Source of the DNA: Trichosphaerium sp. ATCC 40318
Lineage: Eukaryota; Protista; Tubulinea
NCBI GenBank assembly: GCA_038496445.1
Contig: JALMLS010000564.1
Location: 446,755-510,754 of the forward strand
Length of the DNA: 64,000 nt
Direction: 5' to 3'
Below are positions 2,846 through 43,950 of this stretch, piece after piece (position 1 is the first letter of the stretch; each line of letters starts with the position of its first letter). Made by a program: the position numbers and the translations under genes. The notes below the pieces were generated by a model. The model saw only the letters and a program-made list of their open reading frames with translations. It was not told the DNA's origin and ran no database searches.

Positions 2846-3553
2846 TCAGCTCCTTGTCAAGTGAATGCGCATGAAGTAGCCAAATCCTGGTGTTGTGATA
2901 TACAAACAATCCCGTGCATAGAAAATTTCACTCAGTCCATAAAATTTTCCATCTTTGATTACCTTATAAAAATAACATAGCTTTGTGGCCACAAGCACAC
3001 AAATATTGTCATCCATCACAAAGTAAATAAGACCATATTGGCCTGCACATGCTGATTGTAATACAGACTTTTCATCACAGGTGAATAGTATCTCACTAGA
3101 GTGTTCTTCAATTATACTCCCTCTAGCAACTCGAACTGATTTCCATGTTGGCTCAAGAGGTTTTTTGTATGTAATTCTACTTAAACGGCCACGTTTGAAA
3201 TGAAGGCACATCCCTTGGTTGTAAATGTCGTTTACTGCCAACTAAGTTTTGTCAAATACAATACAAGTTAAAACATACTTTATGTGTATCTGGAGGATCA
3301 TAGAAATAGCCTACGAAGTTGAAGTGATAGTCTGACTTTAACTGATCATAAGACTTGAAAACAGTTAAAAAAATAATTGTTTAGTGAAATATCATACCTC
3401 TTTCTCTGGTACATCTGCTTGTACATATCGCAATAACAATGTACAAGAAGCACGGAGAGAACGTAAAATATCACGAGAGGCGAAATCTAGAATAGAAACA
3501 ACCATTTCAGGGGGTAAATCAGTTAACATGCTGTAATATGCTTCTTTGCTCAT
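2846..3553 (-). CDS. F-box protein (spliced)
   Basis: First exon reads MSKEAYYSMLTDLPPEMVVSILDFASRDILRSLRASC (F-box LP.E...I.dF motif); GT-AG introns lead to the 2846-3241 ORF. Confidence 0.65.
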
Positions 3554-3618
3554 ATTTACTTTACTTTACTTTTATACAGTCAAGATTCTGTTTGACGGTC
3601 TTTTATAAACGGACCCAC

Positions 3619-3791
3619 GTTTTTTCCGAATTTTTCGAAAGAAAAAAGGTCGGGTTCTAGTTCCGAGCACAGCGAGGACCCGACCGTAAGTGAACCAGGC
3701 GCTTTCTAGTTAAGTGGACTGCCCTAGCTATGCATCTTTCTGCATCTTTCTACACTTTCGAATTTTTGTTTTCGGAAAATTCGGAAACAAC
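3619..3791. repeat. Inverted-repeat (MITE-like) structure with internal hairpin
   Basis: 3619-3640 matches the reverse complement of 3770-3791 at 20/22 nt. Internal stem 3648-3658/3675-3685; TGCATCTTTC x2 at 3731-3750. Confidence 0.55.
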
Positions 3792-4881
3792 TATGGCCGC
3801 TAAACTTTACAAATATATTTTACAACTGTTTTGTTATCCCATCATCGTCCACTTGTCGCCAGGGCCCCAGATAGGGGTCTCACATAAAGTTAGCCCATGA
3901 TATCATCATCATCGACCAAGGTAAACCAGACTGTGTAGAATATCTGCCCAGCTCGGACAGCGCACTAGCTCCGTATGGAAGCGTTGCTAGTCCGTGTTAG
4001 TCATATTTGAGATCCAAACTGCAGTTATAGCACAAAACAAGCGTGACTTTACTATTTCAAGTTCCAATGAAATGCAGGGTGTTACTTTTGGAGTAAGAGT
4101 TGATAGAATCAAATTAAGCAGCAGGTAGTATGAACCTCACTGATACAAGGTAATGTTTAATGTCAAGTGTTCGTAACATGGCTAATGACACCAGACGAGA
4201 CTCACATTGAAATTACATACTGACAATCACGTGATTTCTTTGAGTGTGGCACGAAACGTTTTAATACGATTAGAGAACACTAAACGACTTGCGTTACTTC
4301 AGTTGAGATTGTCCAAAGAAAAAGGAAACAATTTAAACAGTTTTTGTGGAATTGCACTTGGTTTAGAATACACTGCTGACCTGCGCACATGTATTGTAAA
4401 GAGTCATTGACGTACTGCGATGTACTTTTGCGATCTTAAAGCAAAGAAGAACCTCATGCAAAGCTTCGAATGGCGTTGGTCACAACAGATAAGAGACAAA
4501 TCAACTAATCCTCGTACATGCACGCTACTTTTTCAATTGCACCTTCCAGGTAACTGTAATCTACAAATACAAATAGCCACGTCAGGCCTGTACCATTGTG
4601 CCATTGTGTAGCCTTTGTTGACAGGTTTAGTGAATCATACAACAGTCAACACCCTATCCAACGCTTGTTTATCACTATGCGATGCCCGCAGCAGCAACGT
4701 TCTCCAAAAAGCGCTTTGTACAACAAAACCCCAAAAAAAAAAACTGAATTGACATACGTATGTGCCTAGCTTCATTTGTACGTGTTGCTTACGCAAGGCA
4801 AGAATAAACAAGAAACTCACCCTAACTTTCAAGAGAAAAGTCCCACAAAAACCATTCTTTCAATAATAAATCAAATAAACG

Positions 4882-14400: not shown

Positions 14401-16062
14401 GGCATTTCAATATCTCAAAAGATGCTTGGAATCCTTGACGTACAAGACCTATGGAAGCAAATATGAGTAAATATAGTACTGAACAATTATGTATAATTAC
14501 CTGGATCAGTTTCAAATTTAACAAACATGTTTCCACTACGAGAGAACAAAGAGTTAGACCAAATATTGCAATGCTTATCCTAAAAACCTAAGCACTAAAC
14601 TTACCTGTATGCCATTGTTACAGGTGGTAAGCGATCACCAGAGTATACACCGAGTAGTACACCTACATATAAAGTCAATGAACACCATTAAAGGCGATTT
14701 TAAAGTATGTACCAGTATCATTCAAGCCATCATAAATGAAGACTTTATCATAATCAAATTCGAGATCAAATCGTTGAAAGGTGAATGCAACTGCATCTCC
14801 TTCTTCAAAACCAGTTGGACGTATCGACCTTAAGCACCCTGTTAATACAAATAAACCATTTTTAAAAATCACACTCTTACCATGAGCATGTCAGAGAGTT
14901 GATGTAATTGCCATAGCCTCTGTGATCTCCAAAAGTGCCTGAGTCATCCGTAATAATTTGTAACGGATCACAATACGTTTGATTACAGTCCACTAAAAAC
15001 AAGTATCAGCATTCTCTATCTTCCTGGTACTAAGCGTGTACCTCCGTAGAAACCAGGTGCGCATACGCACGTATCAGATACACATGAACCTTGACTAGGT
15101 GCGTTACAGCTATCTACACACTCTACAAGAAAAAAACACCGTTAGTATGAAAAGAATAACCACAAGCAATCATCCTAACCTTGCGTGCAGTCAGTAGACA
15201 TATCTGAACCACCAGTACAATACACTGCAGTATATTTTAAGCTAAATCCTCTTCCAACTACTTGTGCATCCTACAAAGGTGGTGAGGACTATAACAGGCG
15301 AATTTGCAGTACGCTGTTGAAACTAATCGTGGTTTCAGGTGTTCTTGACGAAAAAGAAGGATGCTCTAAGAAAAGCATATCAGAAGTATTGTTTTTACAG
15401 GTTATCATGCGAGCGCACCTAAGTTTCTACCAGCAAACCATATATATTGATCTCTTACCCAATCAGTAGGTGGTGCTTTGGGAGGAGTAAGCAAAATTAG
15501 AAGTTGTAACGTCCTTTTTTGTAAAAGAAGACAATTGTAAGAGGCGAAGAGTACCGGCTGAACCATCGAAGAAGATCAAAGCGTCGTTAGGCCTTTACTC
15601 TGTTAGTATAAAATGCCATAGAGCTGTTTCATACCATTCTGTGTCAAGCCATTCAAATTCGAAGTGAATACGCACTTTATCGGGCGTTAGTATGTACGTG
15701 AGATGAAGGTAGCGCACCTGGCGCAGGTTTTGGCGCAACAACGAACCAGCATAGTTGATTGATATCATAAGTGGTTTCTTTGTCTGGGTTATTCGTGATT
15801 GTGCCTATAGAGACGCTAAGGAGAAAAGCGGTAAAATTATAGTTATACCGTTTGGTGACGTGAATGTCAAAGGCGGCCATGAAGTGCATTCTCCTGCTGG
15901 TTGTTGTCGTTTGGACGTTGTCCTATTACACACAACGAATTAATCCTTTGGGGCGACGTTAAGATGCTAGCACGCGTACTCGTAGTCTATCAATGCCACT
16001 GATTTAGTTACAGCGTGTATACTGTAAATACACAACAAGATGATCGCTATGTGACGTAGCAT
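11464..16062 (-). CDS. Type I membrane protein with alternating CUB and EGF-like domains (about 20 or more exons)
   Basis: Signal peptide MLRHIAIILLC; repeated CUB motifs (CWFVV, FQRFDLEFDYDKVFIYDG, CRWFI); EGF motifs (CPNKCSGNGYCV, CPQSCGNGQCVSGVCEC); TM segment TLYIVLLVIVGVTVALIFAGIIVWML followed by RKK. Confidence 0.85.
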
Positions 16063-16249
16063 TTCTGAAGCAAGCGTAGCGTGTTATTTAAGGCTGCTCT
16101 TGTAAACAATTAAAATAGTGGACTAGAGCTACCAGAAAATCCACACTTTTCTTATCGGTTGAAATGCATCATAGCATCTTTGGTTAGTTGATAACGTACA
16201 CCGTCTCTTGGAACAAAATTATGTACATTGAACAGTGTTAACGCATAAA

Positions 16250-18035
16250 ATGCTGAGTGCAGGTCGCTTACGCGTTGCACTCAACGCAGAAAGAACAACA
16301 AGATGTATGTCACGTTTATTTAGCCTCAATACATTAATAAACATATTAAATAGCCCTGCAAGGTACTTGGAACAGTATAGAGAACCAACGAGCTAGATTT
16401 GATGAGGTTGGACGACATCTGCGGGTTATTACCCTAGATCAGTGGTATAACATCAGAGTAGCAGAAGTCCGCACTAATGGAGCTGCTGGAATACTTGACA
16501 GGCAAAACCACCACGTACAAACATTACTCATCTTTGTTAGATATGGAGATTCCCTCTCGTTCGCTCTAAGCACGATATACAACGACTACGATTGGATACC
16601 ATCGAACTTTAGGTTAGTAACACCGACCAACTAGCACGTGTTGACAAAAGACACTAAGGCACGCTCCTCATGGATATTGGGATAGCGTAGAGAATCAACG
16701 TATCCGTATGGAAGAAATAGGACAAACGTTAGGTGTCAAAATTTACAATGATTGGTGTTATATAACAGCAAAACAAATTGCAAAGTTTTCAACTGTATTA
16801 GTGAACATGTGAGTGCATAAGTAATAGGTTCATCCAATCCACCATTTACTTTTACGTCAGGTACAACGGATCTGTTTATAAACTAGTGCAGTCTTTATAC
16901 TCTAAGCATACATGGCATGAACATGATTTCAAGCACGTGGTACTTGTTAGTATTGCTTCTAAAACTACTTTAGTGTTTTACTTGATGACCAAGCTCGTTT
17001 GAATGAGCTTGGATACAAGTATGGAATATCTACATTGTATGATTGGTATAAAGTATCGTACCAAGATGTCATTAACGATGGAGGAAGGTCCATATTAAAA
17101 AAGTACAGCACTTAAATTGATCCACCAGCAGTGTTTATTCCTATATAGGTATGAGTCATTGGCACAAGCGCTCAAGTCCTCGTATCCAAATTACGAATGG
17201 GACACATGGAGATTCACTAGAGACTACAAAAGGTTATTGAGTATTTGGACAACCATTTATTGATCCCTACTAGATCTCATACAAAACCTCGTAAAGCACC
17301 AAAAGAACCTGTTTTTATAATTCCTACCAACAGGTATTATTTGTACTAGCGAGTATAGTAACTGACATTACTACAATAGAAAAGTCTTGTCACCAAAGCG
17401 ACTATCTCTTCTTTCTAAGTTTAACTTTATTGCAACGAGACTAGGTATCAAAGATATTGAGGGCTGGTATAAAGCAACATGCAAGGATTTACATAAATTT
17501 GGCTGCCGCAATATTACTCTACAGTAAGTACGACAGCACTACAGAGATTTGATTAACTCTGGTAAGGCATGGTATGGATATGTCAAGAATTATGAGCTAT
17601 GCGTATCCACACTATAACTGGCAAGAGTGGAAATTCAGGTGACACATAGCAATTTCAGTAATTTCACTAACGTTACCAAAGAAAAAATGATATTGCTCCA
17701 TCAGGCTACTGGCAAAATTATAACAACCAAGCCAAGTTTTTACGTAAAGTAGAAGGCTTTTTGGATATATCAGATCCTACACAGTGGTATAGAGTGTCAA
17801 AGGCGGATTTCCATAGATTTGGTGCTAGTGGCCTATCTGCTTATTTTCCAGAGATACTGGGAAATCACTTCCCTTCAGTACCTTGGAACTTCAAAACTTT
17901 TAAAACTATAACAACAAAAACAAAACAAAGGTGAGACCTTGTTAGCTCTTGTTGCCTTCTCACTTACTAATCATTTTACTAAGAGATCTTTTATCATGTG
18001 CCAAGCACTTGGTTACTGTTGAGTTAAATACATAG
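16250..18035 (+). CDS. Trp-rich ~70-aa repeat protein (5 repeats), probable mitochondrial presequence, no C-terminal nuclease
   Basis: Manual splicing through about 10 short introns gives five copies of G(Y/T)W...NQ...LG(I/V)...WY.(V/I)...GG...Y...L...YP.Y.W..W.F. N-terminus MLSAGRLRVALNAERTTRS. No ORF-track entry because the exons are short. Confidence 0.8.
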
Positions 18036-18102
18036 AAGTTCGGACGATGCTCTGGTATTTTATTGAAAGCAAAAATGTACAGTATAAAAAAAGATAAAAT
18101 AC

Positions 18103-19144
18103 TTAACCAGATTCTTCATCTGATGATTCATCGTCTTCAGATTCTTCGTCTGATGACTCACCATCCTCAAGTGCTTCATCTGAAGACTCTTCATCCTCGG
18201 AGGCTTCATCTGATGATTCTTCGTCCTCAGATTCGTCATCTTCAAGGTATTCACCGTGTACTCCAGCAGAAAAGTCAGTGTTTTCTGACAAAATATCATC
18301 TTTTTCGCTTTCGTCCTCTGGATCAGACTCAACGTCATCAGAAGAGGATTGTAGATTAACATTTGGTGCACCTACATATTAGTTAAAATCATTGAGGAAA
18401 GAATTCAAACAATACCCATGTCTTTCATCTCAGTGCCCTTTTCTTCTTTGGACTCTGCAGGGCTATCCTCATCATCACCTTTGTGCATACACAGGAGAAT
18501 AGCAATTGCTACAATAGCAGCTACACCAACAATACTGACGATAACTAACGTGCAAGTAGTAAATATTTACATCTCATTGTGTTGAAAGAATCAAATACCT
18601 ATGCCAGCTATTGCTCCATTGTTGACGTCTTTTTGAGGTGCCTCATTGGCTTCCACGCCTCGTTTACGCCCATTGATACTGGTAACGTATTGTGGATTTA
18701 GTTGTAAAGACTTTGAGCCTAATAAGTATGAAACGTCGTCCTTTGATGTAGCAATGGTTGTAACACTTGTTAATCGGTGTATTGCGATAACGTACCAAAA
18801 GCCGTTGAAACATCTATACATTTACCAGCCTTAGAAACTAGTTGAGGCGCCAAACAGCTCGTGCAATCTGTACTAGAGCTACAGTACGCTATGTTCATTT
18901 CCTAACGACAAACATTTAACAATAAAAGTGCTATTGTGCAACTAATCAACACCTCTGTTGTGCATGTAACTGCGAAAGATTCGTCCCTAAACATAGATTG
19001 CTTGCAAACGTCTTGGCAGCTTATCGTGTATGCAGCATTAGGCTCCCCTGTACAATCGGCGCTCGCGAAGGCTTGCAAAGTAAAGAGTTGTGCATATACT
19101 GTAGAATATGCCAGGCACAACAGTACAAAGGTAGTGGTGGGCAT
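18103..19144 (-). CDS. Single-pass membrane protein with a small Cys-rich ectodomain and a very acidic cytoplasmic tail
   Basis: Signal peptide MPTTTFVLLCLAYSTVYAQ; TM segment (GAIAGI-VIVSIVGVAAIVAIAILLC); tail with DEESSDEASEDEESSDE repeats. Confidence 0.7.
18110..18245 (-). repeat. Coding 15/30-bp acidic tandem repeat
   Basis: TCTTCATCTGATGAT-like units encoding D/E/S runs. Confidence 0.75.
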
Positions 19145-41968: not shown

Positions 41969-43950
41969 TTATAATGACGCACCTTTGAAAGTGTGAACCA
42001 ACGGTTTTGCAGTAGACGATAGATCTGCAGCTAAATCAGGCCTACAGCGGTTAATTGAACAAACACATATGTTTCCTTAGTACACTAACCTGAAGTGAAT
42101 TATAGTGGCAATTATACTATCACGATCTCCAGTCCAATTGTACGGTATGGGAACAATAGTGATGCCTATTTTGCAAATTCAGAATAACAATGTTAGTTTT
42201 GAACATACCAATAGAATCACAAATTTGGGACTTTTCTGCGTCTCTGGATTGCTGTAAAAGAACAGGTTCAAACCTAGCATACGAAGAGTCGACATAGTGC
42301 TGTTCTCCTTGATACTCTAGAGCAATATCAATACCAGAAACAAATACATCCAAGATTATTTGTTGTGACTCTGTTGGCATGTACTCCTCGAACACACTGG
42401 CGCGTGGAAATATTGTTCTAACGCAAGTTGCCAACTTTCTATTGTTACAACAATTAATTATGTGATACTCACAAAATGGTAGTTAAAGAAAATCTGTTGT
42501 ACCTTTGCATGGCACGTTTATCACGATATAATAAATGTTTGTATTTCCAATGGTAGTCGGGATATGCTCTCTTTAATACGGAATGCCAATTTGTCAGAAG
42601 GCTTGCTCCTCCAAGCAACCTGATATCTCTCTTTGGGTAATACTTAGACAACGGGTGAGTAAGGTATTGGCACTTACTTGAGCAACCCTATACCAATCAG
42701 CGTATGATTGTATTCTAAGTTTTTTTGTTGCACTATTTAGGAAAGCACGTGCGTTGGAGAGAACGCTAAAGTTTTGTGCTTTGGCTAAAGACCAATAAGT
42801 TCAATGCACAAGACAATCTTGTGGTACTGAATTTCCATGGGATCCATTTATAATCTGCATACATATATTTTAAAAACCCTGCCACTGATCTAAATATTCT
42901 ACGACTACATTAGTATAAACAGTAACGTTGAATTATCATACGTTTGTATAGATGCACCGACTAGTTGGTTAACTTGTCTTATGCTTATTTTGTACCAGTC
43001 TTCTAGAGATGTGATATTCAATTGCTTCTCCAGCTATAGAATGTTTAACTTAAACAAACGATATTGTAATTACTTTTCGAGTAATAGTCTCTAGGTTGCC
43101 AGGCACGATCCAAAAGTTTCTGTGAACACGCTCTATTATGTTACAATCGAACTTAGGTGGAGTATGAAGTAGCGTACTAAATTTCCAGGGCTCCCAATCG
43201 AAATCAGGATAAAAGTATGACAAGACATTACGTAGGGAATAATCAAATGTTCTATTTTGAAAAATTTTAATCTTAGGCTATCAATGCATAACGTACTGCA
43301 CCAGTGTCCCTCCACCGGCCTTATTCATGTCGGTGACAATAACGTTATACCAATCACTCACTTTTCTTATATTCAACCGTGCTTCGAGCTTTAAAACAAA
43401 GTGAGTATTGCGTACTCTCTAAACTTTTTTTGGTAGTGTTTTATAAATTTTAGTACCATGCGCATGCAAGCAAATTGGTTGCTGAATGATTTGTAAAACT
43501 TGTGAGGCTTTTTGCCTAAGTAACGTTGTAAGACAACTGGAAAAACTTGGACATTGTGAAAATGTGTCATTTCATTATTGACATTTTGACACGTACGAAA
43601 TCTCCATATATCCCACTTGTGGTCTGGGTACACGAGTCCCAGGAACTGAACTAGAGAGTGATTGCATAATTTCATTGCTGTACCACCTATTTTTACTACA
43701 TCTTCAGCGATAAATTTGTACCAGTCATCAAGCTCTTTTATGCCGCGTTCGCGCTCAAACTAACTTGTTTTAATATGCCGCGCGTACACTTGACAAAATG
43801 AACCTGTATAGCGATTGAATTTCGGTTATCTGGAAGCGCCCAAAAGCCTTTAGGGTATCTTGGAACACTTTGGCTTGAGCCAGTAGCTACAAATTTATTT
43901 CGGCGTTGAATAGCCCGGTACTTGCTAGTGGACCAAGCTGCAACCTTCAT
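41969..43950 (-). CDS. Trp-rich ~70-aa repeat protein (4 repeats) with C-terminal RAP/DUF559-like PD-(D/E)xK nuclease domain; paralog of 16250-18035
   Basis: Repeats such as PKGFW..PDNR...GIKELDDWYK...GG...SLVQFL..VYPDHKWDIWRF; C-terminus LDVFV....ALEYQGEQHY...QQSRDAEKSQICDSIGITIVPIPYNW; Arg/Ser-rich N-terminus. Confidence 0.82.

Follow-up and report, generated by a model that had tools for sequence, protein, structure and literature searches.

Helical-repeat proteins with optional catalytic tails, such as the PPR, OPR, HPR, FASTK/RAP and mTERF proteins, run organelle gene expression, and PPR and TALE proteins are among those that have been turned into programmable tools. A gene of this known kind was analysed in a 64,000-nucleotide (nt) stretch of Trichosphaerium sp. 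ATCC 40318 (contig JALMLS010000564.1, positions 446,755-510,754; about 39% G+C), referred to as the window, from whose first letter all positions are counted. The gene lies at 16250-18035 on the + strand and was named gene A. It is a real, transcribed 12-exon nuclear gene for a 428-residue protein with five helical repeats of about 75 residues each, and a verified expressed, effector-less member of a different, very large family, whose repeat appears to be uncharacterised.

Transcript and exon structure of gene A

Contigs of two public RNA runs (X1 and X2) were aligned to positions 15900-18400. Between 16250 and 18035 no start-to-stop open reading frame (ORF) of at least 60 amino acids (aa) was found, the longest being 57 aa. 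A 1,099-nt X2 contig ended at 16171 in a template-switch oligo tail (GTATCAACGCAGAGTACGGG), which identifies the contig as cDNA and 16171 as the 5′ end of the mRNA. Nine GT/GC..AG introns were spliced out in this contig, and a tenth (17639-17681) was defined by a loose contig end, where 17638 continues at 17682. With positional ambiguity allowed for, the ten cDNA-backed introns comprise eight GT-AG and two GC-AG introns (16502-16540 and 16933-16973) of 39-52 nt. The first splice (16304>16354) was seen independently in X1 and X2, and a second X2 contig spanned 17711-17889. When the tail is joined via a predicted last intron, the spliced frame runs without a stop through 428 codons, starting at the ATG at 16250, which is the first in-frame ATG past an upstream stop; by a rough estimate, the chance of a random frame of that length staying open is about 1e-13 at this base composition. 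The features of the gene are as follows (UTR, untranslated region).

16171..16249, + strand: 5′ UTR of 79 nt, from the cDNA 5′ end at 16171
16250..16304, + strand: coding exon 1, start codon and 18-residue basic N-terminus MLSAGRLRVALNAERTTR (cDNA splice in X1 and X2)
16354..16612, + strand: repeat 1, exons 16354-16501 and 16541-16612 (cDNA joints; GC-AG intron 16502-16540 between them)
16659..16932, + strand: repeat 2, exons 16659-16808 and 16861-16932 (cDNA joints)
16974..17232, + strand: repeat 3, exons 16974-17102 and 17149-17232 (cDNA joints; GC-AG intron 16933-16973 before it)
17274..17333, + strand: linker exon SHTKPRKAPKEPVFIIPTN, basic, proline-rich, non-repeat (cDNA joints 17230>17272 and 17331>17378, each shifted by +2)
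17380..17638, + strand: repeat 4, exons 17380-17523 and 17567-17638 (cDNA joints)
17682..17930, + strand: repeat 5 in a single exon, then the K..QR motif, with which the nuclease domain of relatives begins (loose end 17638->17682; X2 contig 17711-17889)
17931..17983, + strand: predicted last intron, 53 nt, GT..AG, phase 2 (donor AG/GTGAGA and acceptor CTAAG/, like those of confirmed introns; no read cover)
17984..18035, + strand: predicted terminal exon DLLSCAKHLVTVELNT with the stop codon TAG at 18033-18035 (sequence prediction)

All introns of gene A but the first are in phase 2. Repeats 1-4 are each encoded by one exon of 129-150 nt and one of 72-84 nt, and their internal intron lies at one common place, before the Y of the LL..Y motif. 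From the uniform phase and the layout of one exon per half-repeat it follows that the gene is built of frame-compatible exon modules.

An earlier reading of the DNA letters (the original prediction) had proposed that this stretch, devoid of any ORF of 60 aa or more, splices into five repeats. The cDNA joints and the 428-codon frame bear this out, and the peptides that it quoted are present in the frames given for them. It had asked for the transcript structure to be checked against RNA, and the check supported ten introns and the 5′ end at 16171, with cover ending before the predicted last intron. The lack of a transcript, which it had named as the mark of a pseudogene, was also looked at: gene A is transcribed, in X1 as well as in X2.

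A 6-codon upstream ORF (MYIEQC-stop, 16222-16242) was noted in the 5′ UTR shortly before the main ATG. The RNA also differs from the DNA at two positions, which may reflect strain polymorphism or editing: 16414 is A instead of G in both RNA sets (CGA to CAA, R to Q in repeat 1), and 16218 in the 5′ UTR is G instead of A in X2.

Repeat array and C-terminal end of the gene A protein

The protein is laid out as follows.

Residues 1-18: basic N-terminus
Residues 19-91: repeat 1
Residues 92-165: repeat 2
Residues 166-236: repeat 3
Residues 237-256: basic, proline-rich linker with its own exon
Residues 257-328: repeat 4
Residues 329-402: repeat 5
Residues 403-428: tail, KTITTKTKQR followed by DLLSCAKHLVTVELNT

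The module consensus is P.GYW....NQR.F...L...LGI....DWY.V......GG..LL..Y..S....L...YPE..W....F. For an independent comparison, a hidden Markov model (HMM) was built from 99 repeats taken exclusively from proteins of other organisms, with no window sequence included. Gene A gave five matches to this model with 46-75 bits and expectation values (E) of 2e-16 to 1.6e-25, namely 75.1 bits for repeat 1 (E 1.6e-25), 68.4 for repeat 2, 66.4 for repeat 3, 46.0 for repeat 4 and 54.1 for repeat 5. The GYW..NQR part is absent from repeats 3 and 4, and GG from repeat 2. The features by which family membership is judged, at least three tandem units of about 75 residues with W8, N13-Q-R, D32-W-Y, G45-G, L49-L, Y65-P, W70 and F75, were found in the protein. 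Per-position conservation was measured over 445 repeats, and within the short helices after DWY the most variable profile positions were 35, 38, 39 and 42-44. The gene A protein has an isoelectric point of 9.6 with 61 lysines and arginines against 41 aspartates and glutamates, and its first 20 residues include four basic and one acidic. The N-termini of 84 homologs are likewise acid-poor (0.86 acidic residues per 20 aa against 2.3 expected).

The C-terminal end was compared with the family profile A3 (60 members, 460 positions). Gene A aligned with E 1.7e-91 over positions 40-363, through TKTKQRDLLSCAKHLV, and the nuclease core (profile positions 364-460) is absent from the alignment. The alpha-beta-beta-beta-alpha-beta domain by which the nuclease-bearing subgroup is told (D ... 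E-[YF]-[QHN]-G..H ... D..K ... PYWWD) is lacking in gene A, and a search along the + strand of the entire window, with E values of up to 200 admitted, returned no segment like the nuclease core. The prediction that the protein stops before the catalytic motif therefore holds, the alignment ending at 363 of 460 and no + strand core being present; a downstream nuclease exon, which would have told against it, was looked for on the same strand of the window and none was found.

The array exon of gene A ends in ..CAA AG/GT at 17930, so that the R codon following Q is divided in phase 2. An identical ..CAA AG/GT split of the Q-R codons is present at the repeat/nuclease boundary of a nuclease-bearing paralog in the window (42.1-43.95 kb, − strand), so that the proposed common phase-2 intron at the boundary was found in both genes, the splice in gene A being a predicted one. 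Retention of intron 17931-17983 would end the frame immediately (AGG TGA, ...KQR-stop), because the TGA overlaps the donor; the catalytic motif is thus missing from the gene A protein whether this intron is removed or retained.

Paralog, family and predicted folds

Two features of the paralog were delimited.

42080..43950, − strand: paralog with four repeats and a Vsr/RAP-like domain (approximate exon model from hand-checked in-frame pieces, without aligned reads)
42123..42482, − strand: nuclease exon of the paralog with KLATCVRTIFP.., LDVF, ALEYQGEQHY and RDAEK (64.5 bits against family profile positions 352-434)

Both genes had been assigned to one repeat family by the original prediction, and an HMM built from the five repeats of gene A alone matched all repeat pieces of the paralog (E 1.5e-12 to 5e-3); in a six-frame translation of the window it matched nothing besides these two genes. 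Identity in matching pieces is 25-45%, which makes them old paralogs and not recent duplicates. The introns of the paralog lie at other positions within the repeats and are of mixed phases (0 and 2), as against the uniform phase 2 in gene A, and the sole intron common to both is the one at the QR codon. Among the Atlas neighbours of the paralog nuclease exon were DUF559/DUF2726-like phage and giant-virus proteins. A model of the paralog from a dynamic program that minimised introns was rejected as biologically wrong, and the hand-checked pieces were kept.

For the family at large, a 49-position profile of window-derived repeats was searched against 1.84 billion cluster representatives (50% identity clusters). 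It matched 5,283 clusters at E<=1e-3 and 408 at E<=1e-30, in proteins with 3 to about 24 repeats; by blastp, gene A shares about 28% identity over about 400 aa with family members (E 1e-54). Named sources are Cavostelium apophysatum, Nematostelium gracile and Echinamoeba exundans (Amoebozoa) and Heterolobosea sp. BB2, and structure searches added Dictyostelium, giant viruses, Planctomycetes and Bacillus DUF4046 proteins. Thousands of clusters of the family are spread over amoebozoans, heteroloboseans, other protists, giant viruses, Bacillota and Planctomycetes, and for its repeat unit there is no solved structure. The C-terminal domain D...E-[YF]-[QHN]-G..H...RD..K...PYWWD was present in 87 of the top 150 representatives, eight of which extend at least 150 residues beyond the nuclease. 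In two database homologs (P0084 and P0047) the nuclease is followed by an ATP-dependent DNA ligase (PF01068, above the Pfam cut-off). The canonical architecture is a repeat array, then a PD-(D/E)XK nuclease resembling Vsr, I-Bth0305I and RAP, sometimes then an ATP-dependent DNA ligase.

That the family has nuclease-less as well as nuclease-bearing members, as had been proposed, was confirmed in transcripts of Nematostelium gracile: three complete ORFs with 4-5 repeats are nuclease-less and end 6-16 residues past the last repeat, and a fourth transcript ORF carries the nuclease. Nine of the 150 database proteins seemed to end after the first helix of the nuclease (helix 1) and were dropped as support, since in both of the two checked at the DNA level the core follows in another frame past an unspliced intron; P0105 (L002:2923-4435), for example, continues into the nuclease core in this way. 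Gene callers without splicing systematically cut the proteins of this family short, and because unspliced introns fake truncations, raw database counts of nuclease-less members are unreliable.

Several further members were noted. A Logan contig from another organism (L001:321-3807) holds a repeat array, an intron after helix 1, a nuclease core at 1559-1954 and a DNA-ligase-like ORF at 1936-2541, the intron being placed after helix 1 and not at the QR codon as in gene A and the paralog; a second repeat-array ORF at 2887-3807 shows the family in tandem, with a nuclease-ligase fusion. In the 705-aa protein P0164 from Nematostelium gracile the nuclease occupies residues 161-254, near the N-terminal third, and repeats run on to residue 668; the architecture may be permuted, or the transcript may be fused or mis-assembled. 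A 329-nt X1 contig matched only 33 nt of repeat 2 (16749-16781), with three gaps and unlike flanks, and probably stems from a further family member that a related organism expresses.

Scans of the exon pieces and homologs with Pfam, NCBIfam and PADLOC gave no qualifying match, and a literature search returned nothing on the family or its motifs and no paper mentioning DUF4046. The repeat unit of the family appears uncharacterised, its only named relative being a domain of unknown function.

Folds were predicted with AlphaFold2. The model of the homolog P0051, which has five repeats and the nuclease, was made from a 60-sequence alignment and had a mean predicted local distance difference test score (pLDDT) of 91. 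In this model the short helices of each repeat, four or five in number, are packed into a bundle, and residues 345-463 form an alpha-beta-beta-beta-alpha-beta unit whose first helix is the conserved K..QR.LF...L.FP segment. The C-terminal domain matched Vsr (1cw0, Z 10.1) and I-Bth0305I (3r3p, Z 9.6), then a DUF559-like protein (Z 9.2), the RAP domain of human FASTKD4 (Z 9.2) and Toxoplasma mitoribosome RAP proteins (Z 9.1); whole-length Foldseek matches of the homolog model were weak, to FASTKD and RAP proteins. By sequence, the nuclease domain had no match in the PDB, and DUF4046, RAP and DUF559 were all below the reach of Pfam in the exon pieces and the 60 family members. A unit model of gene A repeat 5, made from 100 aligned repeats, had a pLDDT of 84.

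Possible function and comparison with known systems

We consider it fairly likely that gene A is an intact expressed gene whose product is a repeat-array binder of organellar, probably mitochondrial, nucleic acid that does not cut. Its two parts were judged separately. Nucleic-acid binding by the array has to be argued from architecture and charge, because the repeat unit has no significant match to a solved nucleic-acid-binding fold, and it was given roughly an even chance. A mitochondrial location, to which the basic, acid-poor N-terminus points, was likewise held to be evenly balanced. The array would bind organellar (probably mitochondrial) nucleic acid without cutting it, and the bound protein could protect, mark or organise its target, or compete with cutting paralogs. 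The array would be the targeting part of the family, because it is constant while the effectors vary (none, nuclease, or nuclease and ligase). The effector would most likely have been lost, or never gained, by an exon-level change that left the frame intact, because the boundary is a shared phase-2 intron and all gene A introns but the first are of that phase. By analogy, gene A may parallel P-class PPR proteins, mTERF proteins and nuclease-dead RAP/FASTK proteins.

The kind of target is pointed to from two sides. The nearest relatives of the nuclease (Vsr, a homing endonuclease and phage nucleases) and the ligase fusions suggest DNA; organellar RNA is suggested by the architecture as a whole and by RAP domains matching almost as well. 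It is possible, though doubtful, that the modules of about 75 residues form a readable code in which each module recognises a short run of bases in organellar DNA or RNA, the specificity lying at profile positions 35, 38, 39 and 42-44.

Several results weigh against a nucleic-acid-binding, mitochondrial, effector-less gene. The repeat-5 unit model gave no Foldseek match in the PDB, and its best VIA-align match (Z 4.4) was within noise. The basic N-terminus suits a mitochondrial presequence and suggests one, by a heuristic call. In a word-indexed search with an 82-residue exon no ortholog candidate was found. Positions 17890-18048 had no cover by X1 or X2 reads or contigs, and the 3′ end of the gene is a predicted one. 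The 16-residue tail DLLSCAKHLVTVELNT scored no better than shuffles in an anchored position-specific comparison with helix 1 of the nuclease (p=0.26), and an HMM test of the tail exon alone against the helix-1 profile was null. The share of true nuclease-less members in the family as a whole is uncertain, since many database proteins that look nuclease-less are gene-calling artefacts at unspliced introns.

In the same anchored comparison the helix-1 segment of the paralog (KLATCVRTIFPRASVF) scored far above all 5,000 shuffles (p<2e-4). The claim that the tail exon is a remnant of the nuclease domain was dropped, both helix-1 tests being non-significant. Of the end alignment with the paralog in the original prediction, the K..QR motif and the intron stand, and the pairing of the 16-residue tail with helix 1 does not. 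The tail alignment was slightly overstated in this respect; the underlying observation was confirmed apart from the last splice, and its interpretation is partly supported, namely as to paralogy, boundary and missing nuclease, with the binding-only function and the genome-wide expansion still putative.

A protein-protein role, in which the repeats bind no nucleic acid and gene A, for example, partners or inhibits nuclease-bearing paralogs, serves as a decoy for them or provides a scaffold, is unlikely. It would fit the absence of a significant match between the unit fold and known DNA- or RNA-binding folds, and the sub-threshold Pfam matches, confined to small helical modules whose functions vary (SAM-like, CH and Myb_Rap1). 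However, the array is fused to the nuclease in most members and to a DNA ligase in some, which makes it the obvious targeting part; the gene A protein is also basic, and its overall architecture parallels that of the RNA-binding FASTK/RAP proteins.

Gene A is not a decayed pseudogene, because it is transcribed and correctly spliced, its frame is open across ten introns and all five repeats are well conserved. It is rather improbable that it is a transcribed, functionless relic that recently lost its nuclease exon and is drifting to decay. Such a relic would agree with the degenerate look of the tail exon, which is not helix-1-like (p=0.26), with the consensus features missing from repeats 2, 3 and 4 (GG; GYW..NQR) and with the lack of an ortholog candidate to show constraint. 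Yet the 428-codon frame stays open across 10 correctly spliced introns, every repeat reaches 46-75 bits against the independent HMM, the identity of only 25-45% to the window paralog marks an old and not a recent duplicate, and nuclease-less members recur in the transcriptome of another amoebozoan, Nematostelium gracile.

An incomplete gene model, with the nuclease supplied by an undetected downstream or alternative exon, would suit the last 150 nt of the model being without read cover and the proteins of other species that seem to end after helix 1 and continue into the nuclease past an unspliced intron, but such a hidden exon is very unlikely, because the + strand of the window holds no nuclease-like segment and an expressed convergent gene lies 68 nt on and takes up the next 300+ nt, and the short introns of gene A (39-53 nt) would make a distant exon out of character.

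This convergent minus-strand neighbour (18103-18821) has its stop codon at 18103-18105, 68 nt past the predicted stop of gene A, and because the stops are so close the 3′ UTRs of the two genes probably overlap. Its product is a membrane protein that crosses the membrane once and has a long tail rich in Asp, Glu and Ser (..DEESSDEESG-stop); the gene is covered by X2 contigs.

Gene A as a putative non-cutting binder was also set beside the known systems. The closest named relative of the repeat is DUF4046 (PF13255; mainly Bacillota). The repeat-5 model of gene A superposed on Atlas DUF4046 models with a template modelling (TM) score of 0.66 over 75 residues (root mean square deviation 2.6); the homolog array matched AlphaFold DUF4046 models with a Foldseek probability of 1.0 and E of about 1e-8, both sides being predicted; and a few family members carry faint precomputed PF13255 matches. 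In contrast, no match to the Pfam DUF4046 model at E<=1 was obtained for the gene A exon pieces, and none of 60 relatives matched it at E<=0.05. The eukaryotic arrays of the family are longer and usually nuclease-fused, and DUF4046 itself is without known function.

The FASTK/RAP proteins (FASTKD1-5, plant RAP, apicomplexan RAP/HPR and algal OPR-RAP proteins) share with the family an organelle-type N-terminus, a helical array and a C-terminal Vsr-like PD-(D/E)XK domain, and one close family relative is named 'RAP domain-containing protein' in UniProt. RAP and DUF559 domains have E.DG..H where the nuclease motif of the family reads E-[YF]-[QHN]-G..H. Unlike in FASTK/RAP proteins, gene A has no RAP (Vsr-like) domain after its repeats; the repeat unit of the family has no sequence relationship to theirs and no likeness in fold that could be recognised, the Pfam RAP domain was found neither in the paralog nuclease exon nor in any of 60 relatives, and FAST_1/FAST_2, HPR and OPR-type repeats were not matched in the Pfam scans. 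The two also differ in distribution: according to a published survey, RAP could not be detected in Amoebozoa and Excavata (PMC8190603), and the family studied here occurs in both groups.

Vsr, I-Bth0305I and the DUF559/DUF2726 phage nucleases are the best structural matches of the C-terminal domain of the family. Bacillus-phage genes match it by sequence, including one with the annotation 'homing nuclease' (37% identity, E 5e-11), and sub-threshold DUF2726 matches were obtained in 12 of 60 family members. Vsr-type enzymes differ in having no array of 75-residue repeats, phages hold homologs of the nuclease part only, and of the segment around this fold gene A keeps only the preceding K..QR motif.

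The comparison with PPR proteins in the original prediction is fair as an analogy of architecture and does not extend to homology. The PPR unit is a 35-residue helical hairpin and that of the family has about 75 residues and 4-5 helices, with no sequence or structural relationship between them; in both, some members of one repeat family carry a C-terminal catalytic domain and others lack it (among PPR proteins, PLS-DYW or PPR-SMR as against P-class). A nuclease-less gene in one window with a nuclease-bearing paralog, the two split at a common phase-compatible intron, points to the array as a self-sufficient module whose effectors are swapped at the exon level, and gene A and its paralog make a clean pair for experiments on the binding target of the array. 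Should the modular code prove true, the family would be a natural toolkit in which one targeting array comes with no effector (gene A), with a nuclease, or with a nuclease and a ligase, and so would correspond, in protists and bacteria, to PPR or TALE proteins, with effectors for cutting and rejoining already built in.

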